Shown: positions 1 to 37,200 of the stretch, piece after piece
How the letters are laid out: every line of letters starts with the position of its first letter
Position numbering within the stretch: the stretch's first letter is position 1
From: Botryllus schlosseri
Taxonomy: Eukaryota
Assembly: GCA_051294905.1 (NCBI GenBank)
Contig: CM119375.1
Span: 3,658,001 to 3,722,000, forward strand
Length of the DNA stretch: 64,000 nt
Reading direction: 5' to 3'
The notes under the pieces: generated by a model
Databases searched by the model: none
The model's input: only the letters and a program-made list of their open reading frames with translations
What the model was told of the DNA's origin: nothing
Translations under genes and position numbers: made by a program

Positions 1-159
1 CTTCTGTTGTTGACAATGTGAACTAGTGTGCAGAAGACAGCAACAATTTGACCAAAGTAAACAGTGGCGATATAGTTGTAACACATGAACCAAAACAACA
101 CCTGAATTTGCTCAAATACATCACTATGATTATATGATACATTCTCAGTAGACTATTAC

Positions 160-6100: not shown

Positions 6101-7207
6101 CCCTTATAATCAGTTTTTGTCTTTCGGATGGAAGGCGTAGACGATAATTTAAAATCCAATTCTGTATGAATTTGCGGACATCAGTCCAGTTTCTATACCA
6201 AGTTGGAGCAAGTCATCATTTGAGGTTATAAAGATTTATTAAGTACACTCTTTGGCTGAAAACGATGGGTTAATTGTCACTCGACAGCAAAACAGATTAC
6301 CAGAGATGTTCAGTAACGGAATACTACTTCTACTTCACAATTTTCAGATTTTTAGGTAAGACTAGGCTTAAAATACTTACCCCTTTTACGTACTCGGAAA
6401 TCGCTAATTCTACCTGTGCTTAGTTGAAATTTAGGACACCAACTATAAATACCTTGAAAGCCTCTGTGGATTACATATGAAAGGTAATTCATGTATAAAT
6501 ACAATACAAATACAAATACAAACTTATATAAAAACGATCATGGTTCTAAATTGATCGGGCCTTCTTACCAAAGACCTTGACGTTGATATGAGCTTCCTTC
6601 ACGCCAGACGCGTTTTCGACAGTGATCGTGTATTTTCCAGCGTCGTAACGGTTTGTTTTTTCGATCAAAAGTTTTGACGCGGCTTCGTGTGTGTCTACGA
6701 TTGCCCGCAAAGCCAAATTTTCACCCGACGGAGATTTTGACCAGCTAACAGACGGACTTGGACGCCCTGAATTGGAATAATTGGTATCAGGAATAGTTTC
6801 AGCAACACTTGTGTTGATCATGGTTACAACTGGTCGAAGTTGAGAGCTTATCTAAAACTTAATAGGTTCTTGGCGATACAGAACTTCAATGCGCAATTGA
6901 ATACTATATTCATAGTGAAATAAAACTGATTATTTACTTCAAACTTCTTTCAAAATCTTTACTAGTTGCTGACGATAATTCCTGATGAGTGTCAGCCGCA
7001 GATATTCGAGTTTATTTCAATATCGATATATTATTTTATTATAAAACTGAATATTATGATAGTTACTTGAGCAATGTGGTAAAGCTGTATAAAAATGAAC
7101 AGCAAACTTGAAATTACTTGCCTGATACAAATACCATAAGCCGTAACGGTTTTCCGGCTCGTACTGATACGCTTCTCCCAATGCTTCCGTCTATTGTCAA
7201 AGAAGGC
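160..7207 (-). CDS. TTN: Titin super-repeat g (partial; C11-like, last C-zone repeat)
   Basis: Exons 7122-7245 (part), 6569-6766, 5489-5808, 5183-5285, 4789-4953, 4434-4724, 4188-4362, 3407-3531, 2817-3075, 1936-2107, 1072-1272, 742-972, 160-379. Distinctive motifs [49 protein letters not shown]...NKCG and PEGPLQY...[15 protein letters not shown] resemble the last vertebrate C-zone repeat as I recall it. Confidence 0.8.
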
Positions 7208-13200: not shown

Positions 13201-16200
13201 AGGCATATGAGATACCTTTCAATTTGATTCCCTGCACCGTCCATGTAACTTCGGGTGTTGGTTTACCAACTATTGGTATGTCCACATTGATGTTCGAGCC
13301 GGATTTCACTGTGACGGTATTGTGGTAAACACCACGCAGATCGGCTTCAGGCAGTACTGAGGTGCAAAACAAAACATACAACAAATTCAAGCAAAGGACC
13401 ACTATTGGAAGTATGAGACTTCTATATACAATTGAAAAATATATCCATACTGAAATAAACCCATAAAATTAGAATAGTCAATAATCCGCCAACCTATTTT
13501 GTGTATAATTCCAACATAGTAGACTCAGCTTAAGCCATATGTTTTTTCTCAAATTTTCACGTCGAAAGACAAGTTTATTTCCATAATATGAGAAAATAAT
13601 TCAATGAACTGGTAGCCAGCGATACAACCATTTGGTCTCATTATACAGCAAGGCTCATAGATGTTATAAATATGGATATATGTTGTAAACAGTTTAATGC
13701 AGTGATATATAGCACAATATATTTTAATGTAATATGCATCTATATATGCGTGTGATATCATATTTGGTGACACGATTGTTGATATACAAATATCTTTTCA
13801 ATTCTCTTCTATTTGCTGACAATTACAACTGACGTTAGCCGAAAATATTCAGCTTTATTTCGATATGAAAATATTATTTTACATTTCCGAATGATTACCT
13901 TGTTCATCTTTTGTCAGTACAGAACAGAACGCGTCACGCGCTTCACCCACTCCTGCGTCGTTCTTGGCTCTCACTCTCACCTCATATTCGAGGCCTTCTC
14001 TCAAATTACCCACAGTGTGAGCGAACACCGAACCTTTCGTGCGTGCGCACTCTGTAAATTTAGGATTGCCCTTCTCGCACATCTCCAATATGTAAGCGCT
14101 GATCCGGCTTCCGCCGTCGTATTCAGGCCGTCCCCATGATACAGTGATAGAATGCTTAGTTACATTGTCGATATCCAGTTTGGTAGGTATGCCGGGCACT
14201 TCTGTGGCTGTGATAGGAGATTCTGTTTCTCTAGGCACGCCAATTCCGTATTCATTTTCCGGAAGGACTCTAAATAGGTAGGTCTGCCCTTCTTGTAGGC
14301 TTGTGATTTTGAACGATGTTCTCGAGCATTTCGTGGCCACTGTCTGCCAGCTTTTTCTGGACACCTCTCTCTTTTCAACGATGTAATTCTTGACGTGGGC
14401 GCCTCCGTCGATAATGGGCGGCTCCCATGATAACGTCGCAGAGTCGCAGGTGACTTCTTTGCATGTAATCGGCCCCACGGGTCCAGGAGAATCTAAATTC
14501 GTATTATATGTCGTCATCAACATAGATAAAAATCTACGCGCGGCAAAACAAACTTTGAAAGTAAATTCGTAATATGGTGACTAAAAAAGTGAACACTATT
14601 GCTAGTTTAAATGATGGCCTCATCGACGAAATTGTGTCTGCAAGTCAAAAATCAGGACAAATCTGAGAAATAAGCTTTAGAGAACGACAGAGAAACCAGG
14701 TCTGATGAGGATAACGTAGTTTTAATAAACAACATCCTTCAAAATTAGTTATGTCAACCCTGCGTATTTCATAGTACGTTTAAGAGTTAACCATATAAAC
14801 AACAAACTTAGGAATCTAAACCAGGGGACTAGATTTAAGAAGTCAATGAAACACAATTGCTGCGTCTTTTATAACATCTGTCCTTGTTTTGTCTTATTTC
14901 CAAAGCTCGCCACAGGCGACAAGCGAAAATAAAGATTTTTTTGTTTATCACATAGTTTTTTTCAAGCAACAACTAAACCAGATGGTAATACAAGGACATA
15001 ATTAGGGCGAAAGTGAGTAAGGGTAAAGAACCGCGTACTAACCCAAAACTTTCACTGTTAAATTCAACGTCTTCTCTCCTGCACTGCTCTCAAGCCTGAG
15101 AACGTATTTCCCGGAATCCTCTCTCGTGGTGGCATTAATTAACAGTAGAGTGGAGTAATCGGTCGTGGTGATTTCGGCGCGGTCCTGCAGCTCCACGTCT
15201 GACTTGTGCCACGTCACGGAAGGTCTGGGCCTTCCGAAGTAGAGGACGAATAGTCTCAGCGAGCAGCCGGCCCTCACTACGTAATGGGACTTGAAATCGG
15301 CGTCGATTTGGAAATCAGGAGCTTCAAGTCGATCTGTGACTGTCACCTGCGTAAAAGATGTAACAATGCTTGAAAAAGTTACATACAAAAAGATTTTTAA
15401 TATACAGTTGAATAGTATATTCATATTGAAATAAACCTGTCAGGGGTGATCGTCAGCAACTAGTAGAGAACATAAAATACCATTGTACATCAACAATCGT
15501 ATCACCGAATATGACGTCACCAGCATGAAAATTCGAATAGTCAAGGCCAACAGACGGCTTAAGCTCAATGCACTAGTTGGATAGATATTTGATAAATTTT
15601 TGTCATCATCTTACATTGCCTGAGGCTTCGGTTGCGTCACCGGGTCCTGCGGTGTTAACGGCTCTGACCCGGAAGTTATATTCCAATCCAGAAGACAAAT
15701 TTGGAACGACGTATTCGCAGGACTTGACAGTGTCCGGATTCATGCGTACCCATTCCTCGTCAATGCCCGATTCTTTGAAAAGAGAAAATCAAAGGATGAG
15801 GTTATGTAGTAGGCAGACTAAATTACTTTTTTAGAATAAACAAGGACATTTTGTCCATCGGTACTTGCACTAATAACTCATTTGGTTTCATTTTCACACA
15901 ACTTCCAATTCTACCTAATAATTTCTTTGGCAAAACTGCTTACTTTTGCAATTTGGATTTTATGGCGTAGAAAATTGTTTTGGGATATGCCCGCATCACA
16001 GTTATAAGTGGATTTGTCATAACAAATGTTCGAAAGAGCTCCTGTATTTCTCTGTATATGGATAAGTTTTAGAATATCGGACCAATTCGTAGAGTCATCA
16101 ATCGCTTTCTACCATATACCATGCAATTTTGACAGTAGCCACCTTCCATAGACTGACTGACCCCTTGACCAATGGGTTCTCATCCAGGGTGCTATCTGGA

Positions 16201-19200
16201 ATGATGATGTATTGCAAGATTGCGGCTAATTGCTTTGTTTAACTTGGTGACTAGTGCCCTGTCTAGACGGTTGAAGACATTTTGGAAATTAAAACTGCAG
16301 TGGTTTTCAAATAATGCTCGTTTAAAGACATTTTCAGTTCAAGTTTCTTATGTCTGAAGCTCTGAGAAATCAATGCCTTCCTTTCTCCATTGTAGTTTGC
16401 CGTGACTTGATAGAAATGTAAACGGCATACCTGTCGGAGCTTTCCTGGCTTCCACATTGTACCCAGTTATCTTGCTTCCTCCGTCGTAAGCGGGCGGAGT
16501 CCAACTCAAAGACACAGTCAATCTTGTTGTGTCAGACACCCGCACGGTACCAGGGGATCCAGGAGCACCTTCAAATCAATACATATTAGCCTACATACGC
16601 AATAGCGATATACCATATACCGTTAACAAAGTTATAGACAGGATGCTCGATTTAATAGTTTCATTAAAGCTGAGTCACTCATCTTATTATAGCATTACCT
16701 ACACTCAAATATTAAATTAAATACCAAAACCAACAAGAACAGCCTCATGGAATATGATTAGTAAATAAAATAAGGTCTATGGTCATTTTGCCATTGAAAA
16801 ATTATTTTCTATTGACCAGAAATGACTGAAACTTACTAATCGGTTCGCTGCATAACATCAAAGCAGACGGGTCGCTGTATTTCCCGATTCCGGCCGCATT
16901 TTCCGCCGAAACTCGGAATTCGTATTCGCGACCATCGGACAGTCCTGTGATCTTATACCGCAGATCTGTGACGGGCGATTTGTTGGCCTTGACCCAACGA
17001 AGTCCATGTTTGTCTCTTCTCTCGATATTGTAGCCTTCAAAAAATAGTAAAGTGATTAGGACAGAACAGAATGATTCGAATACTCGAATCTGAACCGAGT
17101 ATTATGTTCTTTCCAATTCTCTACTAGTCGCTGACGATTACCCCTGACGAGTGTCAGCCAAAAATATTCGGGTTCATTTCGATATCAATACACTATTCAA
17201 TTGCACTTCATACTGTAATGACGTCACAATGAGTGATACTCGAATACTCCTAGCCCCAGAATCAATTTTATGTAGACTTTTGTACTTACCGACAATCTCA
17301 TTACCGCCATCATTTTGTGGTCGGGCATATGAGATGGTAACACTGTCCGGCGTTGATGTACAGTATTCCGGACGCCCCGGGGCATCGGGTGTGGTGTACG
17401 ACACTTTCGCGATTACCGGGTCCGAGAGTAAGGCTTCGCCTACTCCGTATTTATTTTGTCCGGCGATTCTGAACTGGTACTCGTGGCCCTTGATCAGACG
17501 ATGCACGGTCAAATTGTTGGAAGTACAATTCGACGTGACCTTAAAAGCAAAGAGATCGTAGCGTATTTACGTAGCCAGAATAAAATTTGGACAACTGGAA
17601 TATTTTAACTCTTCCCAATTAGACTAGGATTGAATTCGCAAAAACTTTGAAATTTAACAACATTCTTGATTAGACAGAAATACGACAAAAAACTATTTCA
17701 GTTCATATCAAACCAGAATTTATTTTCATAAGCATGACAATGGCAAATCTATGTACACCAAGCTTGGCTCGTTTCGCACTATACAGTTCTCTCGTCGCAT
17801 TTACAGGAGAACCAGCTATTAAATCAGACTTAATATTGGAGAATAGAACCATTTCAAAAATTAGATTATAAATAGAATACAAGCATTTCGCTTTAATTAG
17901 TCTAATTAGACACCTACAATGGCCTCAATACAACTCAGTTTCTTACCACTGCCCAATTCAATCTTGTAGTTTCCCGTTTTTCGATAACGTAGCTTTCGAC
18001 AGACGCGCCGCCATTCTCTTCACACAATCCCCACCATAACGTCACTTTCTCGTTCGTTAATCCCGAGAATTTGATAGGGCCTGCCGGCGGACCTGGCCTG
18101 TCCAAGACTTGGAGTTTGAAATCCATGGTTTTTGTGGCACACGCGTTTTTGGCGGTTATTTCGTATTTTCCGGTGTTCGAACGGTTGCATTCTTTAATGA
18201 TAGCGATTGCGACGCCTTTGTTGTATTCAATCTCGATCTGAAATTGAATTACTTGGTGTTATGTTTGTTTTAGGTTCAATAAATATTCATATTGAACGTT
18301 ATTCAAGCTTCATTGTATACAATGATCTTTGCAATTCTTTATTATACAATTAAAAAGTATATTCTTGTTGAAACAAACCCAAATATATGAACAATCATAT
18401 CAATATACCATGTTCTTTCCAATTCTCTACTTGTTGCAGACGATTACCCCTGACGAGCGTCCGTCGAAAATATCCAGGTTTATTCAATATATCATTCAAT
18501 TGTAAATTGAATTTCTGTACCTCTAAGAGTCTCTTGAAATTCTCTATTACTGGCAGACGATTATTCTTCGTGAGTATCAGCCGAAAAGATCCGGGTTTAT
18601 ATCAATGTGAATATATTAATCGATCGTATACTGAAGTTCTGTTCCCACGAGAATCTATTCCAAGGTTTGTTTTAATGAAATAAACCAAGTCTTACTTGAG
18701 CGTTAGAGGCAAGTTCTCTGCCGTTATGTTTCCATGAAACTTTAGGTTGAGGTTTGCCTGTGATGTAAGCCTTCAGCTTCAAAGTCGTGCCTGCTTTTGC
18801 GGTGAGCCCATCTGCTATTTCAGTATCCAGTTGTATTGACGGTGGTTCTATGAAAAGCGTGTCACCGTGTTGATTTATAGCATGTGATTTATATGGCAAC
18901 AGATATTTACTGAAATCATCTCTGCACACGATTTCAGCACTGGGTAGTGACGGTTTGCTAACAGTGCCTGCGGCATTCCTCGCAGTAACTCGGAAGTGAT
19001 AGGATTCTCCGTTGGTGAGACCAGTGACTGTGAAATCGCACGCTTGGATGTTGGTGTAATTGCATTTCAGCCAACGATCATCATCACCTGTACGGAGGGA
19101 AATATGCTTAAGAACCACAATTACAAGCATACCACTCGATAAAAATAGGAGAGAAATACATCCAGAAAAGAGAACGCGCCGCGATCTGACACTCACCAGT

Positions 19201-22200
19201 CTTTCTCTCGATATTATACCCCACGATTTTACTGCCACCGTCACTCCTGGGTGGAGTCCATTCCAGAGACACAGAATCTCTGGTGATATCGGTCCAATCC
19301 GGGCATCCTGGAGCAGTGACTATATTCCTGGCTGTGTCAAATCGGCTCGGTTCGCTAGGACTGCTGACGCCCGCTGCATTTTCAGCGATGACGCAGAATT
19401 GATATTCGAGGCCCTTGAGAAACAGATTGCTATTCAAGGCATGCATAGATAGATATGATTTTATTCGTCACACCAAGTAACAAAGACGAAAGATACATAA
19501 AAACATGGCAATGTAGGCTATGACAGGACCGGGGGCCCTCAAGAGTCAGTCGCAACCCGTAAGAGTATCCGGTGGAAGCTATAGGTCATTACATAGACCC
19601 ACACACAGACATATACAGCAATCATTCAGAATATATATGCTAAGAAAACAACACAATATTGCGGCTAAGAGAGGATGTAGAAAAAATTGATATAGAATGT
19701 ATTTCTAAAAGTCAATAGATAATATCAGGAATTACAAGTGGTACAAAGTAACATTATCCAACCAGAAATTTACCATATCACTAGATTACACAGAAAATAC
19801 GGATGAATATACATTGATTATGAAAGATGTATTTACTTCCGTAAGTCCGGTGATTTTGTGATCGCGCTTCTTAGCAGGCACTGACGCAACTTTGGTCCAG
19901 AGTATTGCGTTTCTTTCTCGTTTCTCGATGTGATACGCGGTTATCTCAGAACCACCGTCGGACAACGATGCTTCCCAGTTGATAATCATGGCGTCGGCGT
20001 AGACATCTTCTATTTCCGGCTGTGGTGGTGCTGTCGGTACTCTGTTAAAGGATTAGTGAGTAAGATCTCTGACTATATGCAGTGGCAGAGTTGGACATCT
20101 GCGAGTATTTCAGGGCGTATTATGCATAGCATTGTGCCTTGTGCATCATTTTGTATATCGTATGTGCTGAGCGGATGAATATAAAATTCAAATATTATTA
20201 TAATCAACCTGAATGGATGGTCAGCAGTTATTTCCGCAGACTGCACAAATTCTCCGAGTCCGTATTTATTTTCAGCCGCAACTCTGAAGATATATTCTTT
20301 TCCTTGCATCAGCCGCGTGGCTTTGATGACCGTCCTGCTGCAACTGCCGCTGACCGAAGTCCAGGTTGTCGCGGCTGAATCTTTCTTTTCTATGACGTAG
20401 TTTGTGACGTCTGCTCCTCCTGTGTCTAAGGGCGGGGTCCATTTCAGTGCGGCGCTTTCAGACGTGATGTCGACTATGTCCAAATCGCGAACTTTACCAG
20501 GTACACCTATAAAAGAAGTTGTTACGTATGTAGAACATATGTGGGAAACATCATTTGTGAAGCAATGTGGGCATTGTGTTTCATACATGATGCAGCAAGT
20601 ACAGCAATAATAAATATTATTGAAAAGACGTTAATAACTAAACTAACAGCAACTTGACTCCATGTAAAGCTATATTTTTCAATGCTTTCCTATATTCACA
20701 GCATCAATTTATCATTATAATCGGTCTCTATATATTCTGTGTTTAAACTGTTAAAATGCCAACAAGGAAGTCGACAGCTTTATTTCTGCGATGGTCGCGA
20801 ATATCCAAAACTTACCATAAACGATTATCGTGAATGTCAGTTCCTTTCTGCCTACCGAATTTTCCATAGTCATAAAATACTGTCCAGCGTCGGATTTCGC
20901 AACCCGTCTGATTGTCAGCGTGGAGTTGTCGGAAACTTTTTCGTATGAAATACGCTCATTTTCTAAAGAAGAATACTTCTCTTAAATTTCAGTTTACTGA
21001 CAGACAAAAGTTTATTTCTAACAATTAGGAGAAATATTCAAGTAAAATAGTGATCACGACCGTTAGGTCATCCAGTCAACTGGTCTCATTATACAATGAT
21101 AACTATGCGTATATGCTATAAATATATGTTGTAAAAAGTATAATGATTTATTACATATAGTAACATATGCGAATGTTCTATACATCTTACATACATATAT
21201 CATATATATACAATATACATATATATGATTATATGTATTTACTGCTATCAATCAAATTAGATGAAACAAGTAATTATACAAAGTATGTTCTAAAAAGAAA
21301 GAATGAATGATTACAAGATTGCTCAGTGGTGATTGTCAAAGTGAAAAAACTCACGTTTCAGCGGAATCCTCTCTTTCGTCCAAGAAATGGTAGGTCTCGG
21401 TTTAGCAAATACAGGAATGGACAAGTCAATTTGACTTCCTTCTTTAGCATAGATGATTCCGTTCGTCGGTAACGAGCTTGTGTCTGCCTCCGGCAAACTA
21501 GTAATATCTCGAGCCGTGACAGGTCCGACCACTTCAAACTGCCCTAATCCAACTTCGTTTTGCGCTGCAACGTGAAATTCGTACATAGCTCCGGTTGACA
21601 AGTTATCAACCGTAATGTGCGGTTGTCTCGTCTTCAGAGTGTGCCATTCGTCACTGTCTTTCGCGGCATATTTGACGACGTAGGAGGATATCGGAATGCC
21701 TCCGTCTGTAGTGGGTTTGGACCAATCCAGCGAGATTGAGTGGTTGGTGATTCCGGAAACTTTGAGCCCGTTGACAGCGGCAGGAACTTCTGAAAATTTG
21801 AATATTCGTCTTTAAAAGATTAAATAAATACAGTCATGGAGTTGAAACTATGGTGTTGAATACATAATTTTAGGAAGCACCATCGAATGATGCATGCTAA
21901 TATATAAAGAAGACTTACCTACTTATATTTAAAACTATGTAAGAAAAAATATGTACATATAAATAAATAAAAACGCATCTATACTCTCTGAATATTTCAC
22001 TAATGTTCTGTGTCAATCGTTGATTAGTTATAACTGAATATGTATTAGTTTACATTTGATGTGTACCACGCTGTCTAGTGTCTACTAGATTTTTTGGTAT
22101 TATTACGCCACGCAGACAAAATATTTCTTAAATTTCGAATTTCATGCACCGTATTACGGTTCATTACTGGCGAGAGCTGGTAGAACATCTTTAAATGAAT

Positions 22201-25200
22201 AAATTTACAATATGGACATATGTTATTATGTAATTCTGAAGTTCTGTACCACAAATGGCTTGTTTGATCAAAAGTAAATGGAAACAGATTTAAACAAACC
22301 TGCGGCAATCACTAGTTGCGATTCAGACGGAATACCGTATCCTTGCGAGTTCTGAGCCATTACTCGGAAGCAGTAACTTGCGCCCGCTTGGAGATTATCG
22401 ATCTGCACAAGAGAGTTTCCGGTTGATTCAAGAATCGAAAAGGTAGTAAAAGTGAAGCTAACCTTGCAAGTAGTCTTGCTGACTTCAGCCAACACCACGG
22501 TCCAGGCGCGATGGATCGCTTCCCTCTTCTCAACTCGATAATTGAACACTTCGGAGCCTCCGTCAATCAATGGGGCATCCCATGATATAACGGCATCCTG
22601 CTGAGTCACCTTTTTGACTTTAATTGGACCAGGGGGTCCTGGTGTGTCTGAAATTGAGCATCAAATGATGATGAAGAGAAAATAACACAAACTTTGACGA
22701 GTTGATATGATTGAAGTGGATTCTGTGACTAGTTCAAAATCAGTAGTGTAATGATGGAGGATCCGGCTTCTTGATCAGTAGGTCGTGGGATCAATCCCTG
22801 GCCGGGTCAGACCGAAGACCTGATCAGTAACACTGGTATCCATGGCCTATACGCTTGGCGCTCAGCATTACCGAGATAGCATATGAGGTGGTGCAAGACT
22901 TAGAAAGCCTTACAAGACAGTATCTGCACATGCCTTGTCCAGCGCCATACGCACGTCATGCACTCAAGGTATGCATCTGCACAGATCATGTGTATGTATA
23001 TCATGAGCCAGTGTATATGCCGCAAAAACAACAAAGAAAAAATATTCAACGTCCTCTTTCTATTCCTTACTGATGACATCACATAATACGATTTTCCTAA
23101 GATCAAAGCTGGAATGTTCGAAAATCTCATCACTTGAATGCATACTATTGTCACACATAAAGAATAATGAATACCTAAAACTTTAATGCTGACGAATGTG
23201 TTGGCAGCTCCACTAGCATTTTCAAGCCCCAATGAATATTTCCCACTGTCATCTCTGTTACAATCCTGTATGATAAGGTGGGTCTTGGAGCGTGTGTTTT
23301 CCACTTGAATTCTTGGGTTGACGTTAACATTGACATCACCTGCAAGACAGAAACAAGCTCACTCAAATGACACATAATTCATGAGAAAAATATGATTACC
23401 TTTCGTCCAAGCTACATTGGGAGTCGGTCTTCCTTTGATTGGTACCTCGATGCTTACAGTAGAACCAGCTTTCACAATCATAGTCTTTCTCAGCGATGAA
23501 TCGAGTTCATATTCAGGAGGTTCCAATCTGTCTTCAGGTTTGATTGTTCCTAGCCAGAATCGAATGCGTTAAAGTCAGATTCAAGGATTAACACATTGAG
23601 AACAAACCTTTAATCATAGCTGATTCACCAACACCGCCCTTGTTTATAGCAGAAACTCGGAAAAGATAGAACTTATCCCCTGATAGCTTCTTGGCTTCGA
23701 ATGAAGTGTTGATAACATCGGTAGCAAGAATCTTCCAAGATTCAGAATCTTCAATTTGATCGTCTGCCTTTTCCAGTACAACACTCTCAACGAGGTATCC
23801 AGTAACTGGACTACCGCCGTTATACGCTGGCTTGTTCCACGCTAATGTGACGCTGGTGTTCGTAGAGTCTTTTACTCGGCAATTGCTAGGCGGGCCAGGG
23901 ACATCTACAAAGGTTCATAGTCATGATGAAGTCGAATTAAAAGGTGTGAAAATCTATGTCACCAATTGGGTCTCTCATTATCACCGGAACGGAGGGTATG
24001 CTGAATTGGCCAATGCCAGCCGCATTCACGGCTGCCACTTGGAATTCGTACTCGTTGTTCGGAGCTAATCCTGTGACTTTGTACCTTTAAAATAGGATAA
24101 GTATTATTTATGAGCACTCGCCTGTTGATAAACTTAAATAATATCTTAAATCACATGCATTATCTAGTGGTCATCATTAATCATTACTCCCATTTTGGAG
24201 AACTCAATAGGCTTAGCAAACTTGCGTTACTTACTCAAGTGGTTATGCGTTTGAATACTTCCACTTCTACTTTTTAAGGCAGTGCTACTTACTTTTCAAA
24301 ATTTGGATTTTGAAAAGTAGAGAGCAGTCTTAGGATAAATTTGCATCAATTTTTTAGTAAATTATGATAATGTTAACTGAATATATACCAGAATATCGAA
24401 TTGGTAATTTAATAGTATATTCATATTGAAATGAACCCGAATATTTTCGGCTGACACTCGTCAGGGGTAATCGTCAGCAACTAGTAGAGAATTGGAAAGA
24501 ACATTGTATATCAATGTTCTTTCCAATTCTCTACTAGTTGCTGACGATTACCCCTGACGAGTGTCAGCCGAAAATATTCGGGTTCATTTCAATATGAATA
24601 TACTATTTAATTGTATATTGAAGTTCTGTACCTCCAAGAAGCTCTTCGAATTGGTAATTGTGCATCTTAAAATTAATGTTTAAAGTTTGTCCACCAAAAT
24701 CTTCCAAATACTTTTTGAAATTACTGACTGGAGTAATTTTCATAACTTCTATTTTCAACTTAACTTGCAGTAGATTTAAGATGAGTTGCAAATTCATACT
24801 TTTACTTCTAGTTCGGGACATTCTACTTCTACTTGCAGAGACTAGCTGACTGCTGTGACAACCTCATGCATGATCTGGCCAAGTATATTGCAATCATAGT
24901 TCTGCCCTTGCAGGCAGCCAACAAGCTGTCAGCATTTCAGAAGAAAATTAGCAATATTTCGATATGCATATGGTATATTTACCACTAAAGTATATCAGTA
25001 GTAGTTTGAATAGTTTTATGCAAACAGGTGCGGAAATTTCTCATATCCAATTATACATTCCATACAAATTCTACAATGAAAGCAAAATACTCACCTCAGG
25101 TCTCGAATTTCCTTTTTGCTGCATTTTATCCACCTTGCGCTTTTTCGTTCTCTCCTCTCGAGCACATATCCGTCAATATCAGCTCCGCCATCAGTTTCCG

Positions 25201-28200
25201 GCCTGGTCCACATAACCACGCATCCAGTTGATGTCACGCCTGACAATTCGGGCATTCCAGGAGCGCTAGGCTCGGCTGCAAAAGGGATGTGCTGGCTACC
25301 ACGGCTTTAACACTGTTTACAAAGCAGGTGTTACCGAAGGCATTCTTTGCGACGATAGGTTCTGATATCAGCGGTTCGCCGACACCAAATTTGTTGACGG
25401 CTTGAATTTGGAATTGATACTCGTTGTTCTTTATCAAGCGCGGCACAGTAAAGGAGCAATGTTCCACCATTTTTGTGACAACCGACCTGTAGTTGAATAA
25501 CATCGTAAGATATTTTGAAAAAAGCAACAACATATACACAATTTATTGGTATTATAGCAATCCGGTAATGGTAAGAATGCATTTGGAGCAGTGATTCAAA
25601 ACCACAGTTTTACCATAATTAGGACTATTGTAATGCAGGGTTGTAATGACTCGAGTCACGATTTTCTGATGACTCGACTTGACTCGAGTCATTTTCTCAA
25701 AATATGAAAATGACTCGACTCGATTCAGTCTGTGTATTTACTCGACTTGGACTCGAGTCATTGCGTATGACTCGAACCAAGTCATATGACTCGAGACTCA
25801 GACGGCCAAGACCAACATTTCATTGTGATTTCCAAGAATAGTAAAGTAACAACCCTATTGGGATTTCGTTTATTGGTACTGGTACTTGAAAATGGCGACA
25901 AGAAACTGTTGTAAGTGAGGAAAAATTAGTATATTATAAACGCGAAACATTCGATATCACCAAACAAAGTTATAAAAGTAAGTTTAGTTAAGGACTTCAA
26001 CTGGAAACTGAGCAGTTAACACAATGACTTGGACTCGGACTCGAGTCATAATATCATGAGTCGGACTCGAACCTCTGCTCGAGGACTTGGACTCGGACTT
26101 GACTCGGTGGTGAATTGAAAATGACTCGACTTGACTCGAGTAAAAACTATGAAAGTGAGTTTGACTTGTGACTTGGTTACGACCCTGTTGTAATGTCTGG
26201 TGTAGATATGAGCATGCGACATAATAGCATATGACACTTAAGCAAGTGGGTTAAAGTTAGGGTTAGATTTGGGTTTGGGATTGGGGCGAGGATCAGTTTT
26301 GGGTTTATCAAGTCGCATACTACACTGTCTTTCATCATTGTGTGGCATGCTCAAATATCTGGCAAATATTATACACATTGTGACGAACGAATTTAAATTT
26401 TTAGAAATCTCAGATAAAAATTGAGTTTCGTTATTCGAAAGTCAATAGTACCATGACAATCTGGAAGTCTCTCTCTTCGAGACGACATATCCTTCGATGC
26501 TAGATCCTCCAGTCTGAGTAGGTGGCTCCCATCCGATTGTGACCCTCGACTCTGTAAGCCTTGAGAATTTCACAGGACCAGTAGGAGGACCAGGTTTGTC
26601 TGAATGAGATATGTTTTGATAATATTTTTGTAAGCACATACATAAATTCGTGTACGACTGTACCTTGCACCATGACTTTAATTTGAACAGTTTTTTCACC
26701 GCAAGCGTTTCTCGCCGTGATTTCGTAAGTTCCAGAGTCGGCTTTGGTGCAATCTTTCAAAACCAAACTGCTGTGATCTGGAGTAGTGTCGTATATGTGT
26801 TTCGTATCCGGTTTGATGTTGACACCGTTTCTAGTCCATGCTACTGCAGGCACTGGTTTTCCTTGTATGCCTACGTGAAGCCGCAAGGCAGAACCAGCGG
26901 TGACTTTGACTCCGTCGATCAAATGAGGATCTAAATCTATCCTCGGCGGTTCTGTGAATTAGATTAACATTACTGAGCTGCTGAAAAATAATTCCTGATC
27001 ATAAATACTCACTATAATCATCTTCACACTTGACAGGCCCAGTGCTGAACGATGGCTCGCTGAAGACGCCACCCGCGTTTTTAGCAATTACTCGGAATTC
27101 GTATTCTGATCCACCATTCAATCCTAAAGGTAGTATTCATAGTAAATAGATTTGTTTCCAAATTAGATCCTCTTTGGGATTCATTTTCAAGAATCATTGA
27201 AGATAACTTTGTTTGAAGATATTCTACTGATATTTTACTTCAAAACATTCAAAAAAAGGAAGAAAATATGCTAACTATACAACATTGCAACTTCATGGTC
27301 AGTCCGAAAGGTGGTTCTTTACCAATTTAGATCCACTTTGAGAGTTCTTTTACCGATATTTCTCATCACTTTGCGTGGAGAAATTTCTGATATTTCACTC
27401 AACAAAGATAATTATACCGTGCAAGATAGATATGCAACACTGCGACTCACCAGTGACAGTATATTCATTATCTGTTATAATGCTGAAGCTTCCTTTCGTC
27501 CATCTGCCTTTAGGCAGGTCCTTCCTTTCAACTACATATCCAACAATCTTTTGTCCCCCATCATATTCCGGCTTCTTCCATCTCAGTGATACAGACGATC
27601 GTGTGACATCGATGACTTCAACGTCACGCGGTATGTCGACTGGATCTCTTGCGATTACTGGCTCCGTTGGACGACTGGGCTTACTGACGCCGGCCGCGTT
27701 CTCTGCGTACACACGGAATAGATATTCGAGGCCTTCTTGGAGACCGGTGACTCGGAAATTCGGACTTCTGATGAGAGATCTGGAAAAAAGAGATAATGAG
27801 AAGACTATCGGAGGTATATGTAAAGTTCTTTCAAAATTTCTACTAGTTGCTGACGATTACCCTTGACAGCCGGAGATATTGGGGTTCATTTTTATACAAA
27901 TTAATATTATGCAATTGGACAACGAGAAAACTTTATAAAGGAGCATCAGAGTGAGACAGAGCGAGAGAAAGAAAGAGAGAGAGAGTATATTGCATCAACC
28001 ATGAAATACAGAAGGCAATTTTCATAAACGCGCAAGTCATGAAATGATGTAATCTTTCAATGGACGAACTGACATTACATGGTAGTGACGAAGAGATCCA
28101 ATAAGATTCATGGATTCATATAATTAATGGATTTGTTAATTTGATTCAATAATTAACTCACCGATTCATTTTCTTCCAAGTAATGCTGTTCCTGTCTTTC

Positions 28201-31200
28201 GCCTCCAAATGATAACCAGTTACCGGATTACCTCCATCATTGTCTGGGGCGTCCCATTTGACAGCCATGGACTCCCGATTGCTAGAAACCACGTGGACTG
28301 CAATAGGTGGGTCCGGTACCTGTGATGTGGAAATGGTGTAGAATTAATAAAATTACATCACCGATAAAAAAATATTACTTACTGTGAAGCCTAGTTTTAT
28401 GACGACAGGCTCTGTGACAGTAGCGGGTCCGACACCAAAGCGGTTGATAGCGCGCAATCGGAAACTGTATTCTTTTCCAAGCTCGAGTTTTGTGCACTTG
28501 AACGTATTACGTACGATAGCAGAGGACACCTCTTTCCAGCTTGGATCCTCCGCACTTCGTAAATCGACAACATAAGAGCTGAAATTGATTAAAACAGGTT
28601 GAGTTTGATATCGTATTGTTACCTTGAACATCATTTTATACCTTATAGCTGCGCCTCCGTCATTTGTCGGCGGCTTCCAAGACATGGTAACTGACGAATC
28701 AGTGACATCTGTGATTTGTAAGTCTTCCACGAGTCCGGGTTTGTCAAGAATTACAACCTTTATTTTGGCGGACTTTGAGCCAGCTTGATTTTCAGCACAT
28801 ACTTCATAGATTCCACCATCAGCCTACATTATGCAGTGACGGTAAAACATTTAATCTCGGTGATATGACCAACAATTTTTGCCGTATGAACTCTTAACAA
28901 ATACATCGGATACCTAGAGAACAGCTACTGATATTATGTGAAGTGGCCCTAAAAGTAGATGGACCAACCTGAGACGCATTTCTGATCTTCAAAGCCGCTG
29001 CCTTTGGGGTGGTCTCTTCCAAGCTAATATTTTTGCCTTCCTTGACTCTCTCTTCATCTTTTATCCACTTAATTCTCGGATTCGGTTTTCCACCATACGG
29101 AATCTGCACAAATTTTATAAGGAAACTATTCTACATATCACACATTACTGAGCTAATCACCTCCAGATCCAAATTGGAGCCGGCCTTCACGTGTACGACT
29201 CCATGAGGCAGTTGTTGTAAGTCAAACGACGGAGGAATTACAGTATCCTTCATTAGTATAGGCGAAGTGGCTTCTTTTGGATCGGAAAGTCCGACTTCGT
29301 TGAATGCCGAGACTCTGAAATGGTATTCTCTGCCTTCCTTCAGATTTTGGATTTGACATTCCGGCTCCTTGACCGTGGCTCTTTTAATCCACTTGTTCTG
29401 GTCTTTTTCAAGCGACTGAAAATAACATTGAAGTCCACTGTGTTAAATATACGCGTCTATTTCAATATTCAAGTTCATACTGGTGTGTATATTTGGGTAA
29501 AATGTCCTGGGTTCTTAAAGGTGATATTACTGACTCAACCCTGTAACGTTACACAGATAGCTATATACTAATAATATTGTATGTGTTTCAGTCTGTTAAC
29601 GCTTTTTTCACACACTCAATATGATGAAGCAACAAAATCTCTCTCTCTCTCTTGATATATTCGAAATAAATTGTATTTTTCCAAAGGCCGTACCTCCACA
29701 ACATAGCCCAATATCTTCGAACCGCCGTCGTCTTCGGGCTTGCTCCATTGCCAAATCACTGATGATTTTGTGGCGTCCGAAACTTCCAGATTGTCGGGAG
29801 ACGATGGTACCTCCATGGCTTTTATAGGCACATCCGTTTCTGCGGGTACGCCGATGCCTTTCTCGTTCTCAGCAATCACTCTAAAATGAAAACTTGGTTG
29901 AGATGATCGCATACGATATAGTTCTTGATAGCTTTCATATAATAGTCCCTACTAGTGTCATAACATCACAATCCGTGGTACTTGAATACTAGACTAACCA
30001 TTGAATCACTGAGACTGCAGATTTTGCCCAGGCTTCAGACTTGTACAAACTAAACATTTAGTTAGTTGACGGTCAACTAACTAACAGTTTTTTGAGTAGT
30101 TCTAGTTCTAGTTGTAGTTGCTGATTTCGAAAATTGCGTAGTTCTAGTTCTAGTTGTAGTTGCGGATTTTGAAAATTGCGTAGTTCTAGTTCTAGTTGTA
30201 GTTGCAGATTTTGAAAATTCAGTAGTTCTAGTTGTAGTTTTAGTTGCGCATTTCAAAAAAATATTAGTTGCCGAACAACTAGAAAACACTCGTGTGTCCT
30301 GCGTGATGAGACTCTCCTCGCGTGACAAGTGAGGTTACTGCGGGTTGCTGATGTGATCATGACAAAGGATCAAATGCTCATTGTTGGATCATAGTTAATA
30401 CATTGATTATGCCGAGTTCACTGATAACTCGGCAAATTTACAACAATCGACAGTCCGCAGCGACACGCGATCTCCCGCTGAGGTTGTTTACTAATTGGAA
30501 TGTGAACTAGTGATCTAATGCTGTGCACTAGCGAGTATTATCTCGGAACTAAGCTGTCGCATCTGTTAAACTTACGAGATTTGATTCGTGATGACGATGT
30601 CGACCACGCCTGCCCAGGCACAAGGAGAAGACGATCTGGATTCGCCCAAGGTATATTTACAAAGGAAATTGCATAAATTGCCTGGGTCGTCTCCTACTGG
30701 CTCTCCAACGCACAAGAAACCGAGACTCTCACTCTTCAACTTTCTACCTCAAAGTCAGTGTCGTCCGCTTGAAGTTAAATCAGGCCCGTCTGAGGTGAAA
30801 AAGTATGCCAGAGAACATCGACTACCCCTGGGTCAGAATGTGCTAAACTGTTGGCGGAATATGACCGACTTGCCAGAATTACGAAACTTGGCGAAAGATT
30901 TTCTTGGGATGACTACGACATCTGCGCCCAGTGAAAGGGCTTTCACGCATGCTGGGATTTTGTATTCCCCAAGAGGGCAAAACTCAACGAAAAAACATTT
31001 TCGCGACTCATGTTGATTCGCTGCAATCAGCAACAGTTGCAGAAAATGGTTTAGTTTATCCTGTACTGATGACAGAATAGTTCTGTCTGTCTGATTTTTC
31101 AGTAATTTCGCTGTACCGACGCTCATGTGGAAGGCTGGAACGCCGAATTTGAATAAAATAAAAATGAATGAGTTGATTGAGAATTAAATTTAGTTAGTTG

Positions 31201-34200
31201 TGTTTTAGTTAGTTAGTTGCCGATATTTAAATTTCGTTAGTTCTAGTTATAGTTCTAGTTGCGAGTTTTGAAAATTGAGTAGTTCTAGTTCTAGTTCTAG
31301 TCGCAGGATTTGAAAATTGGGTAGTTCTAGTTCTAGTTCTAGTTGCGAGTCTTAAAACTTGAGTAATTTTAGTTCTAGTTCTAGTTGAGCTTTTTGAAAA
31401 TTCAGTAGTTTGTACAAGTCTGCCAGGCTTAATTAAAGGCATGTCTGATAGTTTGATATTGCAATAAAAATGACCTGAAGAGATAGCTAAGTCCTTCGCT
31501 CAAGGCTATCTTGAGGTGAGTTCTTTGACAACTGGTATTCACGGTAGACCATGCTTTGCGACCAGATTCCTTCTTCTCAACAATATAATTGGAAATGTGG
31601 CATCCACCATCGTTAATGGGCGGTTTCCAAGAGAAGACTGCAGATTCCTTTGTGATATCTTTCACCTGTTCGAAGATACATACATATATAAATACCATAT
31701 GCCATTTGCTTAAACTTCAGTAATATTACTGTGAGATCTTGACAAGGTCCTGGCGTGTCCAAAACTTTGACAGTGCAGCTGACTGCTATGGCTCCAGAAC
31801 TGTTGTCCAGATGTAATGTGTATTTTCCAGAATCGTTACGGTTTGATTCGGGAATGAAGAACATGGTGCCGTGATCTTCGTAAGTGACTTGCACGTGATC
31901 GTCAACGCTGGAGGCGCCTTCTTTGGTCCAGCGCATGGTAGGTGTAGGTCTCCCGCGCACGGGCACGAATATTCTACACGCAACGTTTGGTCAATGTTCA
32001 CATGCAATATTGAGAAGATTACGAATATAAATCATAACTTAATGACATCAGAGTCACCAGTTTCTAGTTATGCATGTGCCAAAGATAATTTTTTCGGCAG
32101 TTTTTTTCAGTACTGTTATACTTGTATTGCTTCTTTGGTGAAATTGCTACATTTTTTGGAAAAATTTAGATCATTCAACAAAATTGGTGTCAAATTAGCA
32201 TCAAATAAATGATTCCATCCTTGATTACAGCCAATTGTCAAGATCAAGATATGTAAAGAAACATTACCTCTCGTTCACAGATACTGATCAACAATTTTTC
32301 GACACTATATAATAGAATTTCCCACCCAAAATACCATTTTTTGAAATCAATAATTTTCTATTAGAATAAGCTCGCTTCTATGGGTAGGAATTGATCCAAA
32401 TTTTCCATGTCATGCATCACAAAGAGTTGAAACGAGCAATAGGGTCGTTCAAACACAACTTTTCTCTCAAGTTTCACACAAATTGCACATCAATTTAAGA
32501 TCAATCCCAACCCGAAAATTGAAACTAAGTCATCAAGTTTTTTGTTTTAAATCCAAAATTTTCTTCTCCAATATCTAGACTTTGGAATATATCCAAATTT
32601 CATGCACAGTTTTATTTTAGGTAATCTAACACTATCATAGGGCACCCAGTAGGATTGGAACAAAATTAGTTATTTTGGAACAACCCTATTACTGATTTAA
32701 ACTTTGTGTGAAAATTGTAACGTTTACATACCTAACAGAATTTCCAGCTTTGACGACGATGTGCTTCCTGAAATCTGCGTCCGGCGCAATTTGCGGAGGC
32801 TCGTATCTTTCGCCAGGCTGTACAGTGGCCGGCATCACAGACGCCTCTCCAACACCAGCAGAATTGAACGCGAGCACTCTGACTTTGTATTGTTCAGATT
32901 CCTGCGCAGATAAGTTCAAGTTTTCAGTCAGTCGTTCAATCATTGATATTTTCATCGATTCAAATCTACGCAAGATTAAGTTACAATGAAAGATTGGACT
33001 GAGTCGAAAAATTGGCAGTAGTCTCTTTGTTAAACATCCCACCTTAGCCTAGAGCAGAGATTTTCAACCTGTAGGCCTTGACATAGCTTTTAGCTGGCAA
33101 CAGAACTTTTCTGATATAAGGCTGTGGCTTTCAACCTGAGGTCACACTAGCGCCATTCTAATTTTAGTGATCAGCTTCATTTTCAAATCGGGAATTGGCC
33201 AGTGACCATTGAAAGGTTGGGAACCCCTGTTATAGAGCATGCAACATAAGATAAACATATTTCAATATGAATATATTATTCAATTGTAGATTGAAGTTCA
33301 GTGCCTAGAAAAGTCTGTCGAAGTAGACATATTTGTTCAGCAGAAACTGTTTGAACTTCCAGCTAAATGTGGATACAATCGACCACTGCCAGATAACTAA
33401 TGTACCAAATGCGTGAATTTGAAATCAAATTACAATACCTGTAGATCAGTTATGGTGTATTCTGTCGTTCGCACACCGGCTGATGGCGTGCATTTAATCC
33501 ATTTCTCCGTATCCAATTCGGCTGGGCAAATCTCCACATGATAACCTGACACATCATCTCCGCCATCGAATGACGGCGCTTTCCAAGATAAAGACACTGA
33601 TCTCTTAGTGGAGTCCACCATTTTTGGTATTCCAGGGGGTCCAGGCGGGTATACTGGCTCCTTGCACAACGCCGGGGCGCTGCTGTCGGAGCAGGGGCCT
33701 GTTCCGGCTGCATTTTCTGCCGAGACTCTGAATTCGTATTCGTAGCCTTCCGTAAGGCCGGACACTTTGTGGTGGAGACTGGAAACAGCCCTGCATGGTA
33801 ATGGTACAGATTGAGAGTAGCCATTGGCAGCCATTTTTAAGAATCTTCTAACAAAATTGAGACTGATCGATTTTTACCATCGGTTGGAGGTGGGCAGTAA
33901 AGAAGTACGTCTAATTTTTCAAGTAATTAGGTAAGTCATGAGTATTTTTATTATTTAGTCAATGGTTCCAATTCTACATTACAGTTTTTCAAGCAAAACT
34001 GCTTGAGCTTGAGAGTAGAAAGTAATTTTAAGGTATGCCTGCATTTCTGCACGAGTGAAATTGTCATGAAAACTGGGCGAAAGGGCCCCTGGATCACAGT
34101 GACCGAATATATGTTCGAATATTATACCTCTTTGTGCTAAGATTTTTCATGAGTCTAGAAATTTTTAAAGTAGCTACGATACTTCCTTTCGATCCAATTT

Positions 34201-37200
34201 CAAATTTTCAACGTCTACTTCTTGAAATAGTTTTTGAAATTTAAAATCACTAATCAAGTAATCAAGTAGAATTTTCTGGCATTTCAACTACCTTGAGTAA
34301 CGATGCCGACAACTTTGGCAATTACTAGTATTGATAAGGCGCTATGATCTAGCTAACAGTATCAAATTGAATATCTTGCATTGTTTCAGAATGCCAAATT
34401 GCTAAATTACCAATATAATTGTCTGTAATTCTTACCTCCTGACAGCCCTCATCCAACGCAATGAATTTCTCTCTTTACGTTCGATATGATATCCTGATAT
34501 TTCATTTCCACCGTCAGACTCGGGGCGTGTCCAGGCGATAACTACAGAATCTTTGCCAGTCGAAGTAATCTGTACAGATAGCTTGTATAATGTATATTGA
34601 AATTAGTAAAAGGATGAAAAAGTATAGGCTATATAATGTATTGACCCATTCGTTCTACAGTACATGCGGCGTGCTAACTGCTAAGGACGTTTCTTATGAT
34701 ATCTGACCTCTGGTTTTCCTGGAGCGCTTGGCACTGTGAATGGGTCCTTTGCAAGAACCGGCTGAGATTCCACAGGCACTCCGAGGCCATATTTATTTTC
34801 ACCCATCACTCTGAATATGTACTCGTTTCCTTTCAGCAAATTGATGACCTTTGCGAAAATGTATATCATAACAAAAAATCAATCACAGTTATTTTCCTTC
34901 AAACAACAAACCTTAACCGTTAAGCCTTCCACATTGGAAGCGACTCTCGTCCAAGTTAACCTTGAAGTTTCTCTTTTCTCGATGACATAATGCGTCACAG
35001 GTGCACCGCCTGTCTTTAGAGGCATTCCCCATGTAAGTCTGCACTTATCGGATGTCACATCCGATACTTCGATGGGGCCGGAGATCGGACCAGGCCTGTC
35101 GAGGACCTTCACATCTATTGTGATTGACCTGAATAATTGAGAACAGAAATGAAAATCTCATTTTTATAGTTTTGACTCGAGTCAAATCGAGTCATTTTCA
35201 ATTCACCCCCGAGTCAAGTTTGAGTCCAAGTCAGCCAGCAGAGGGTCGAGTCCATGTCATTGCGTTGATTGCTAAGTTTAGAGTTGAAGCCTTGCTAAAA
35301 ACCGCCTTTTATAACTCTCTTTGGTAATATCGAATGGTTAGCATTTAAAATAAACTAATTATCCTCACTTTTAACAGTTTCTGGTCTCATTTTCAAGTAC
35401 CAGTACCAATACGCAAAATACCAACAGTAGAGTTACTTTACTATTTTTCGAAACTACAATGAAATGTCGATTTTAGCAGTCCGAGACTCAAGTCATATGA
35501 CTTGGTCCGAGTCATGCGCAATGACTTGAGTCCAAGTCGAGTCAATACACAGATTGAATCAAGCCGAGTCAAGTGATGACTCGAGTCAGTACAACCCGGT
35601 TCTTAACCTTGGTGGCATGGATCCTGTGGGGGCTTGCACATTTGCAGGCTAATGTTGAGACTACAACAATAAAACTAACTACATTGTACCTATTCATAAG
35701 ATATATTTCTGACTTATGCCAATATTTTTTCTTAGTTTCAGTGCTAACCAAAGGTCATAACAGCAATCCTTCTGATACTAACACTAATAATTGCACTCAA
35801 AATCGAAGTGATTTGGAGTAGGAACAGGCTAAATTGATGGCCCTTTTTTCTAGTTTCTTTTAATTTTGTAATCCTCAGCCACTCAAATTATGTTGATTAC
35901 TTAAAATTTAACCGAGGCTGTGTAGTTTAAAAAGTATTATCCTGAGCTAGGTCACAATAGGGGGTCTTCACAACCAAAAAATACACTCAGAGGTCCGGAA
36001 CAAAGAAAAAAAGTAAATTATTTTTCAGATAATGAGTTCAATAATTCGAATTTGCAAATTCTTACCTTGTACCGGCAGCATTTTTGAGCTGCAGCAGATA
36101 TTCGCCAGTGTCATCCCGGGACACGTTATTGAGAACCAAAGTGGTAGACGCATCGTCGTTGAAAATTTCAGTTTTTGGCGAGTGATCCAATTCGACACGG
36201 TTTCTGCTCCAAGTAACAGTAGGAGACGGTTTTCCAAATACAGCGGCTGACATCTTTATATTATCCCCAGCTTTGGCTGTGATGGTGTCTCGTAAACTGG
36301 AATCCAGCTCCAAACGCGGAGGCGTGAATATATCCTGGCATGTAACTGCGTCGGAAGGTTCGCTTGGTATTGACACTGAACCAGCAGCGTTCTTTGCAAT
36401 GACACGGAATTTATAAGTAGTATTTTCCGTTAGACTTTCAGCTGTAAATTTGCAGTCGATCACGTTACTGAAGTTACACTTCAGCCATCGCCCGTCTGGT
36501 TGTTCCTGACGCTCGACTGTATATCCTGTGATTCTAGCACCGCCGTTATCTTCAGGCTTGACCCAAACAATATCTGCTGTAGTGCGGGTGACGCCGGTCA
36601 CTTCAACAAGCCTGGCATGGCTGATTTGGTCGATAGCCATTGCCGGGCTGCAAGGGTAACTCGGTTTCCCGCAACCGGCTGCGTTTTCAGCGTAGACTCG
36701 CAGTTCATACTCCAGACCGCCCTTGAGAAACAAAGACATTATTAGAATGTAAGTTAAAGATTTATTTTGTCAAGTGATAACGTCACAAAATAACATTAAC
36801 ATAGAAATATGATCTTCATAGAATTTGCTGAATATACACTTAATACAGTCAGAATTGAACTACCATAAAATTTTCAGCTTTTCCAGATTTGATTAGAATT
36901 TCATAATTATAGCTGCACAATTTATTCCGAATTTGAGTGAAACTAAAATTACTGAATTCGCAAAAAAACCTAGAAATTGAATTCATTTCGGAATGAGCAA
37001 GAAATTCAACGATATCTAGTCTAGTTAGTATCAAATTGAGAAACTCAGGTATGAATAAAGAGTTTTCCAGGAAAAGAGTGGAATGTATTTGACAACATGT
37101 CTATATTGCTTGCTGCGATATCGTGCACCTCTAGATGGCATTGACTATTAATAGCGTTTATAAATATGAGGAAATAGAATACAAGCACATTGATCAATGC

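Follow-up and report, generated by a model that had tools for sequence, protein, structure and literature searches.

Introduction

The vertebrate titin gene TTN contains a 17-kb giant exon, human exon 326 (exon 327 in the 364-exon numbering), which is to our knowledge the longest of all known vertebrate exons. Block-wise intron loss is generally modelled as recombination of a gene with its reverse-transcribed mRNA, and genome studies of Oikopleura and Ciona have described high intron turnover in tunicates, with gain of introns at proto-splice sites. Here, we analyzed a stretch of 64,000 nucleotides (nt) from the tunicate Botryllus schlosseri (assembly GCA_051294905.1, contig CM119375.1, positions 3,658,001 to 3,722,000), hereafter called the window, which carries a titin gene on its minus strand. 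An earlier reading of this window from its letters alone (the sequence-only reading) had noticed a sharp switch in intron architecture near 27 kb and proposed that it is the imprint of an ancestral giant titin exon that was later cut by new introns. We found that the switch is the 3' edge of a long block of the titin C-zone that lacks every ancestral-type phase-1 boundary intron and whose 5' edge lies at the site where the vertebrate giant exon begins. Judged from these sequence comparisons, the block is probably a broken-up relic of the vertebrate 17-kb exon.

Materials and Methods

Flanks of 120 kb were added to the window, and the gene was modelled on the minus strand from Fn3 and Ig profile matches, a 13-domain super-repeat profile and scoring of GT/GC-AG junctions. 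The Fn3 and Ig profiles were trained on the window's own open frames, and 124 partial-domain matches were placed. For each junction, all frame-compatible GT/GC-AG pairs were scored, first by the domain profiles and then by the super-repeat profile, which was built from uninterrupted proteins. An intron was called canonical when it lay in phase 1 at a fixed linker column of the super-repeat profile, that is, at a domain boundary (columns 194, 291, 390, 486, 586, 687, 786, 882, 982, 1083 and 1185). Positions are those of the window, and the numbering continues into the flanks. The two source runs of the spliced contigs, X1 among them, were judged to be RNA by guess. The loci of the second tunicate (L015-L019) came from ENA assemblies ERZ25067576 (ctg9578) and ERZ22157276 (ctg13658l); one contig was walked, which gave 59.9 kb of merged sequence, and this was modelled in the same way and independently. 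Only the exon ends of the salmon titin model (P0007) were used.

Results

Overall architecture of the gene

The minus strand of the window revealed one long series of Ig and Fn3 exons, which were matched by the Pfam families I-set and fn3, and the spliced model of window and flanks encoded 15,945 amino acids (aa) without a stop codon; a 120-nt exon at 62426-62545 was recovered during modelling. As evident from the profile matches and the spliced model, the C-zone super-repeat consists of 11 domains in the order Ig-Fn-Fn-Ig-Fn-Fn-Fn-Ig-Fn-Fn-Fn, and this pattern was matched exactly 11 times in the window and flanks. D-zone-type 7-domain repeats lie 5' of the C-zone and the domains Ig-Ig-Fn-Fn-Ig-Ig-Fn lie 3' of it, and in a second tunicate, described below, a Pkinase open reading frame (ORF) follows the same P-zone domains. 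On this domain order and repeat count, the gene is titin/connectin with an A-band C-zone. The sequence-only reading had labelled the super-repeats of the window a to g and had made its argument conditional on g being C11. This assignment was correct, as exactly 11 super-repeats were counted before the P-zone order, and a to g are therefore C5 to C11. The C11 and P-zone domains run on below window position 1.

Spliced contigs from two RNA-like runs matched approximately 12 junctions, and every junction covered agreed with the model. Both ends of the exon 26664-26951 were confirmed, together with 25275/25335, 27451, 28162, 28316-19/28380-83, 28578/28642, 28823 and 29415/29694; the match of record 1 of RNA contig X1 stopped exactly at 26951. 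The reads of bulk RNA-seq run X23 fell on intronic repeats only, with no exon coverage, and run X15 proved to be genomic DNA.

A block of the C-zone without boundary introns

The block extends from 82,601 (start of C2 Fn11; G000:C5:3740601) to 27,013 (end of C8 Fn7) and comprises 63 domains and 6,298 aa over 55.6 kb. It is now cut by 70 introns into 71 exons with a median length of 230 nt, the largest being 831 nt. Across the whole C-zone, canonical introns were found at 0 of the 62 domain boundaries in the block versus 35 of the 59 boundaries outside it (Fisher 7e-15), and an empty run of 62 boundaries occurred 0 times in 100,000 shuffles, in which the longest run was 38. A search of the super-repeat alignment for in-frame hidden introns revealed no linker insertion of 8 aa or more within the block. 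At the 5' edge, an exon ending at 82657 is followed by an exon starting at 82601, with the junction in phase 1 at column 1083 (C2 Fn10/Fn11). The distribution of canonical introns over the super-repeats and the features around the switch are listed in Table 1.

Within the window, our independent model reproduced the counts on which the sequence-only reading had been based, namely 45 introns upstream of the switch (44 modelled introns plus an in-frame 66-nt intron at 45042-44977) and 50 introns downstream of it. All 20 donor exons that had been listed correspond to phase-1 introns at fixed linker columns, the sole difference being one position (12148 instead of 12147). Phase-1 boundary introns were absent from all 37 boundaries upstream and present at 20 of 35 downstream (hypergeometric term of approximately 1e-8, by hand arithmetic), and the split at Ig-to-Fn junctions was 0/10 versus 8/10, as had been claimed. 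Upstream introns close to a boundary were either off phase (phase 0 or 2; 53532, 51734, 47186, 48293 and 28383) or placed 7-12 residues from the canonical site (60033, 49376 and 44489). The ACA/GTAAGT arrangement of the phase-0 intron at 28320..28382 in C8 recurs in C6 at 53532.

Structural comparison with the vertebrate giant exon

A library search identified a vertebrate giant-exon open frame of 5,743 aa (P0001) that is approximately 75% identical to teleost titins and has twelve relatives of near-equal length on contigs of 18-36 kb (13 cluster members). Its architecture is one Fn domain, five super-repeats and an Ig-Fn pair, giving 58 domains. The frame starts with 'DVPGPP' after a pyrimidine-rich read-through, which is the phase-1 site Fn10/Fn11 (column 1083), and ends with '...KIT' followed by G-K/T/M, which is the phase-1 site Fn2/Fn3 (column 291). 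The large exon at the salmon locus likewise has its end at the phase-1 site of column 291, and phase-1 introns follow it at columns 390 (Fn3/Ig4), 586 (Fn5/Fn6) and 687 (Fn6/Fn7). The expectation that the boundary introns of B. schlosseri coincide with vertebrate ones was thus borne out at columns 291, 390, 586 and 687, which are identical in position and in phase 1 in salmon and also in the second tunicate. The salmon model itself (P0007; locus L014, GCA_002021735.2 MPKV02004448.1; 3,192 aa) contains a stretch of approximately 10 domains that is duplicated nearly exactly and a broken repeat order, in which Ig-Fn-Fn-Fn comes right after Ig-Fn; the probable cause is a duplication within the giant exon that arose in assembly.

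To place the human exon in the same register, we assumed that titin has 132 Fn3 domains and that the C-zone corresponds to A43-A163, so that A150 would be Fn9 of C10. The human giant exon is 17,106 bp long (PMC12198301), variants from c.72146 to c.85302 fall within it (PMC13007378), and human exon 344 is A150, the 119th Fn3 domain, which carries p.Cys31712 (PMC5123623). Only an exon from C2 Fn11 to C8 Fn2 fits these data, as a register one repeat off in either direction leaves a reported variant outside the exon. In mouse, a deletion of exons 305-325, which comprises 2,177 aa and was described as 'super-repeats 1 and 2' (PMC5648799), is consistent with this register. The human register and the ends of P0001 together therefore indicate that the block and the vertebrate giant exon have the same 5' limit, the exact phase-1 site C2 Fn10/Fn11. 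At the 3' side, the proposal that the switch coincides with the end of the vertebrate exon was right about the super-repeat, which is C8 in both cases, but not about the boundary, as the block ends at Fn7/Ig8 and the vertebrate exon at Fn2/Fn3.

A copy-by-copy orthology of the super-repeats with those of vertebrates was also sought by sequence and was rejected, as the offsets differed by 1-2% (permutation p 0.45) and no diagonal was present after double centring. A word-index search with a piece of amphioxus titin returned fish and other distant proteins only, with no usable amphioxus fragment.

Comparison with a second tunicate

Three library proteins, P0008 (3,571 aa), P0003 (5,756 aa) and P0013 (2,504 aa), are single open frames on metagenome-assembly contigs and are collinear with the B. 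schlosseri protein, to which they are 53-58% identical; the corresponding values for vertebrates are 41-47%. From this identity and the introns held in common, their source is probably a second tunicate. P0003 had been considered as a vertebrate giant exon, which was rejected because it is 56% identical to and collinear with C4-C10 of B. schlosseri, and it was assigned to the other tunicate.

The introns of the two tunicates were compared in the small-exon regions, C2 Fn2 to C4 Fn11 and C10 Fn3 to Fn6. All 45 B. schlosseri introns in these regions recur in the second tunicate at the same column and phase, the canonical introns in C2 and C10 among them, and the intron set of B. schlosseri was therefore already present in the common ancestor of both tunicates. 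This result contradicts the earlier expectation that the introns upstream of the switch are lineage-specific. Nine additional introns were found in the second tunicate; none of them is canonical between C2 Fn10/Fn11 and C4, and in C3 there is an intron in phase 1 three codons beyond the canonical Fn10/Fn11 site. In both tunicates, the series of canonical introns 5' of the block ends at C2 Fn10/Fn11.

The second tunicate also contains three intron-free exons of 10.7, 17.3 and 7.5 kb (3,571, 5,762 and 2,504 aa). The first extends between the D-zone and C2 Fn2:72, the second between C4 Fn11:31 and C10 Fn3:11 and the third between C10 Fn6:63 and the kinase. Four of the five resolved edges are introns common with B. 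schlosseri, and the fifth, C10 Fn3:11, is present only in the second tunicate. The middle exon erases canonical introns of C8-C10 that are kept in B. schlosseri, and the human A150 exon is bordered by two of them as well; the giant exons of the second tunicate are therefore secondary block-wise losses. It follows that giant titin exons can form more than once. As the ends of the second-tunicate exons lie at quite different sites, such ends are not forced by site, and the coincidence at the 5' edge of the block is informative.

Some further observations concern tunicate sequences of this kind. The 17.3-kb exon is near the vertebrate giant exon in size and super-repeat phase and lies two repeats further 3' (C4-C10). 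In the merged second-tunicate sequence, the donors at 6690, 22050 and 49771 need GC-AG rather than GT-AG junctions. Two other proteins, P0205 (2,261 aa, on a 10-kb ENA contig) and P0113 (952 aa, on a JGI contig), are 46-47% identical to B. schlosseri titin and span C4 Fn9 to C6 Fn10 and C7 Ig4 to C8 Fn2, respectively, and the start of P0205 falls approximately at the intron site C4 Fn9:73, which B. schlosseri and the second tunicate have in common. By their sequences, these two may possibly represent a third tunicate lineage with intron losses of its own.

Two classes of introns

Comparison of the 35 canonical and 122 non-canonical introns of the C-zone revealed clear differences. The median length was 67 nt for canonical versus 376 nt for non-canonical introns; the preceding exon ended in AG at 17% versus 57% (Fisher 4e-5), the next exon started with G at 6% versus 56%, and AG/G flanks were present at 0% versus 34%. 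All canonical introns are in phase 1, whereas the non-canonical ones occur in all three phases. Proto-splice-type flanks thus accompany the non-canonical introns, and the vertebrate giant exon, being a single open frame, has no such introns. The non-canonical density per domain was 1.10 inside the block and 0.91 outside it. The claim that unrelated new introns cut the block therefore stood insofar as a distinct, younger-looking class exists, but this class is not special to the block, being equally dense outside it. If the block had been emptied when mid-domain introns were already present, these would have been removed as well; given the equal density, most of them were probably gained after the block had formed and, given that they are shared, before the two tunicates split.

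Different copies of the repeat also carry non-canonical introns at matching columns and phases, with 23 identical pairs versus 2.3 expected. The position Fn2:72 in phase 2, for example, recurs in C2, C5, C6 and C8 (such as 64319, 54893, 31475 and, beyond the window, 88902), and C6 and C8 agree exactly at columns 123, 268, 416 and 587, with a fifth position that is off in phase (461 phase 1 and 460 phase 0). Recent duplication of repeats, such as C6 and C8, was considered as the source of these recurring positions and rejected; as the copies are just 34-49% identical, it does not explain them. A further-reaching reading, which we consider possible but rather less likely than not, is that approximately 70 introns re-populated an intron-free stretch of approximately 19 kb in stem tunicates, at the density seen elsewhere in the gene (approximately one per 100-residue domain), and were targeted to a few hot spots of sequence or structure rather than inserted at random, with a spacing that left no exon long. 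If gain at hot spots were true, the gene would be a dated natural experiment on the origin of new spliceosomal introns.

Other features of the window

Several side observations concern individual introns and loops. Fn11 of C6 carries in one of its loops a 38-residue acidic, Ser-rich insert (48436-48549, minus strand), which may be coding sequence or an in-frame intron; at the same column, Fn11:43, there are 8-residue inserts in C5 and C8 and an intron in C9. By far the longest intron of the window, 6.5 kb at 37690-44219, lies within Fn5 of C7, and the ORF 38991-39407 inside it had no Pfam match. The 1.6-kb intron 29881-31474 contains a transposon remnant, an ORF at 30588-31016 (plus strand) that matches the C-terminal dimerisation domain of the hAT family (Pfam PF05699, E 5e-6). 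An intronic repeat of approximately 182 bp at 63001-63183 has at least 45 other copies, 84-94% identical and spread over many genome contigs, and is probably a short interspersed nuclear element (SINE) or a miniature inverted-repeat transposable element (MITE). The intronic stretches 24600-24796, 25585-26175, 27752-27948 and 29919-30500, which showed very high read depth in all runs and many aberrant joints, are high-copy repeats.

Table 1. Features around the switch in the window and canonical introns of the C-zone. Strings give presence (1) or absence (0) of canonical introns over the 11 boundaries of each super-repeat.
Feature	Positions	Strand	Details and evidence
Window share of the block, C5 Fn2 to C8 Fn7	27124..64000	-	45 introns, all mid-domain or off-phase; 0/37 canonical
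In-frame stop-free 66-nt intron, Fn3 of C7	44977..45042	-	aag/GTAATA...TTCAG/gat; model check
Phase-0 intron 2 nt from the canonical Fn5/Fn6 site of C8	28320..28382	-	Model; RNA contigs, 3-nt alignment ambiguity
Mid-domain phase-1 intron just upstream of the last block exon	27124-27450	-	Model
Last block exon, C-terminal third of Fn7 of C8, 111 nt	27013..27123	-	Model and sequence
First canonical phase-1 intron after the block, 61 nt, Fn7/Ig8 of C8, column 786	26952..27012	-	Model and RNA contig
Single-Ig exon (Ig8 of C8), 288 nt, phase 1 at both ends	26664..26951	-	Pfam I-set E 7e-19; spliced contig
Second canonical phase-1 boundary intron, 64 nt, Ig8/Fn9 of C8, column 882	26600..26663	-	Model and RNA contigs
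C8 Fn9 to C11 Fn9	1..26599	-	18 further canonical phase-1 boundary introns among mid-domain introns; model
Canonical introns, C1			11111100111
Canonical introns, C2			00001111110
Canonical introns, C3-C7			None
Canonical introns, C8			00000011110
Canonical introns, C9			11010010010
Canonical introns, C10			10111011100
Canonical introns, C11			10111000000

Discussion

Taken together, the results lead us to regard as fairly probable a history in which stem tunicates gained introns anew within an ancient intron-free block that is common with vertebrates. That the block is older than the tunicate-vertebrate split is suggested by the coincidence of the 5' edges. Before that split, the centre of the C-zone would have lain in one intron-free exon, the forerunner of TTN exon 326/327, which may have come from recombination with reverse-transcribed mRNA or from central repeats multiplying inside one exon. 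In the tunicate stem, the C8 introns at Fn2/Fn3, Fn3/Ig4, Fn5/Fn6 and Fn6/Fn7 would also have been lost, which would have moved the edge to Fn7/Ig8. A wave of intron gain may then have followed at approximately one intron per domain, mostly at AG/G proto-splice-like sites and over the whole A-band, block and flanks included; it would have preceded the divergence of the two tunicate lineages compared, and the second lineage would later have removed introns again in three large blocks. What the sequences show is the block with its edges, the two intron classes, the introns common to both tunicates and the secondary losses. That the block and the vertebrate exon go back to the same event, like the mechanisms of loss and gain, is what we infer from these patterns and did not observe.

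Several points weigh against this history. The 3' edge of the block lies five domains beyond the vertebrate end, with no intron at C8 column 291, and a shared origin therefore needs one more loss event. As sequence similarity does not reveal which copies correspond, the register rests on the 11 repeats and the same P-zone, and in human it is in part calculated from the coordinates of variants and the assumed C-zone limits A43-A163. Block-wise loss recurs in tunicate titin, and an independent event in stem tunicates is not far-fetched. The comparison comprises only two tunicates and vertebrates, and the RNA check covers only approximately 12 of approximately 215 junctions.

The alternative that survives best is convergence, according to which stem tunicates lost the boundary introns from C2 Fn11 to C8 Fn7 in an event of their own, by a deletion that was mediated by complementary DNA (cDNA) or was genomic, and the common 5' edge reflects chance or an unknown local bias. 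The second tunicate lends weight to this view, as it built three more giant exons itself (3,571, 5,762 and 2,504 aa), one of which erased canonical introns that B. schlosseri keeps, including the two that flank human A150, and the mismatch of the 3' edges of the block and the vertebrate exon points in the same direction. However, an identical 5' edge among approximately 120-170 boundaries, combined with a 3' edge in the same super-repeat, has a rough joint chance of less than 1 in 1,000, and the second-tunicate exon ends reveal no preferred sites that would account for the coincidence. We consider convergence possible but on the whole rather unlikely.

A variant of shared ancestry is that the boundary introns were never present, C3-C7 having arisen by unequal crossing-over inside one intron-free exon. 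In agreement with this, the central repeats are 45-49% alike among themselves (Fn6-Fn11) versus 31-45% to C1, C2 and C8-C11, and the C-zone's most conserved, central stretch has been remarked to correspond to the single long exon (PMC10665226). This greater similarity may, however, just mean stronger constraint; the block edges are off the super-repeat borders (at Fn11, and at Fn2 or Fn7), and, since the same 11 copies are present in each lineage, any such expansion would be older than the tunicate-vertebrate split. These points make the variant unlikely, less so than the next two alternatives.

Intron sliding, in which the boundary introns persist but have shifted by a few bases or codons, appears very improbable. 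Introns that might have slid in this way are those in phase 0 that lie 2 nt from Fn5/Fn6 in C6 and C8 and those in phase 1 at 7-12 residues from a boundary; C6 and C8 read ...T[0]VP where the canonical form is ...F[1]DVP, C9 has a phase-2 intron at the same linker, and the second tunicate has the phase-1 intron three codons beyond the C3 Fn10/Fn11 site. Against this, any nearby intron is present at only approximately 8 of 62 boundaries, the canonical sites are nucleotide-exact in all other copies and species compared, and the near-boundary introns also occur in the region that is intron-free in vertebrates, with the strong proto-splice-like or GTAAGT contexts of the younger class. An artefact of the gene model, in which mis-called junctions make the contrast unreal, is of negligible probability, for although the model is profile-guided, most junctions lack an RNA check and one in-frame intron (45042-44977) was missed by the solver, the 15,945-aa protein is stop-free and free of linker insertions of 8 aa or more within the block, open frames continue across most block boundaries, the RNA contigs agree at every covered junction and the independently modelled second tunicate gives identical positions.

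If the block is a relic, as we favor, the giant exon is older than the ancestor that tunicates and vertebrates share. The block would then be a rare dated series in one gene, in which old introns are absent, a burst of approximately 70 introns follows and block-wise loss is renewed in a sister lineage. With the signatures of the burst, namely proto-splice flanks, greater length and recurring positions, intron gain, its target preference and any pressure against very long exons become testable across tunicate genomes. For titin biology, the 11 x 11 layout of the C-zone and the P-zone have been kept to the domain in tunicates.

Comparison with known systems

The B. schlosseri block and the vertebrate TTN giant exon share the 5' phase-1 site, the central super-repeats C3-C7 and the absence of boundary introns. 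They differ in that the vertebrate exon has 58 domains and the block 63, and in that the former is one exon, whereas the latter is split by 70 mid-domain introns, a class that is absent within the vertebrate giant exon. Outside the block, the 35 canonical introns lie at the same columns and in the same phase as the phase-1 module introns of the vertebrate A-band, but they are very short (median 67 nt) and mixed with the second intron class; the exon 26664-26951, with one domain and phase 1 at each end, is a classical titin module exon. The mid-domain introns are similar to those described for intron turnover in Oikopleura and Ciona in their mixed phases, AG exon ends (57%) and G starts (56%). 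In contrast to that turnover, the gains can be dated here against a defined, formerly intron-free 19-kb stretch, and their positions recur. The giant exons of the second tunicate correspond to the general model of loss by cDNA recombination, as introns are missing over 10.7, 17.3 and 7.5 kb with the frame intact and four of the five resolved edges lie at introns common with B. schlosseri, but these losses lie inside a very long gene and are not 3'-biased, and the mechanism is read from the pattern.

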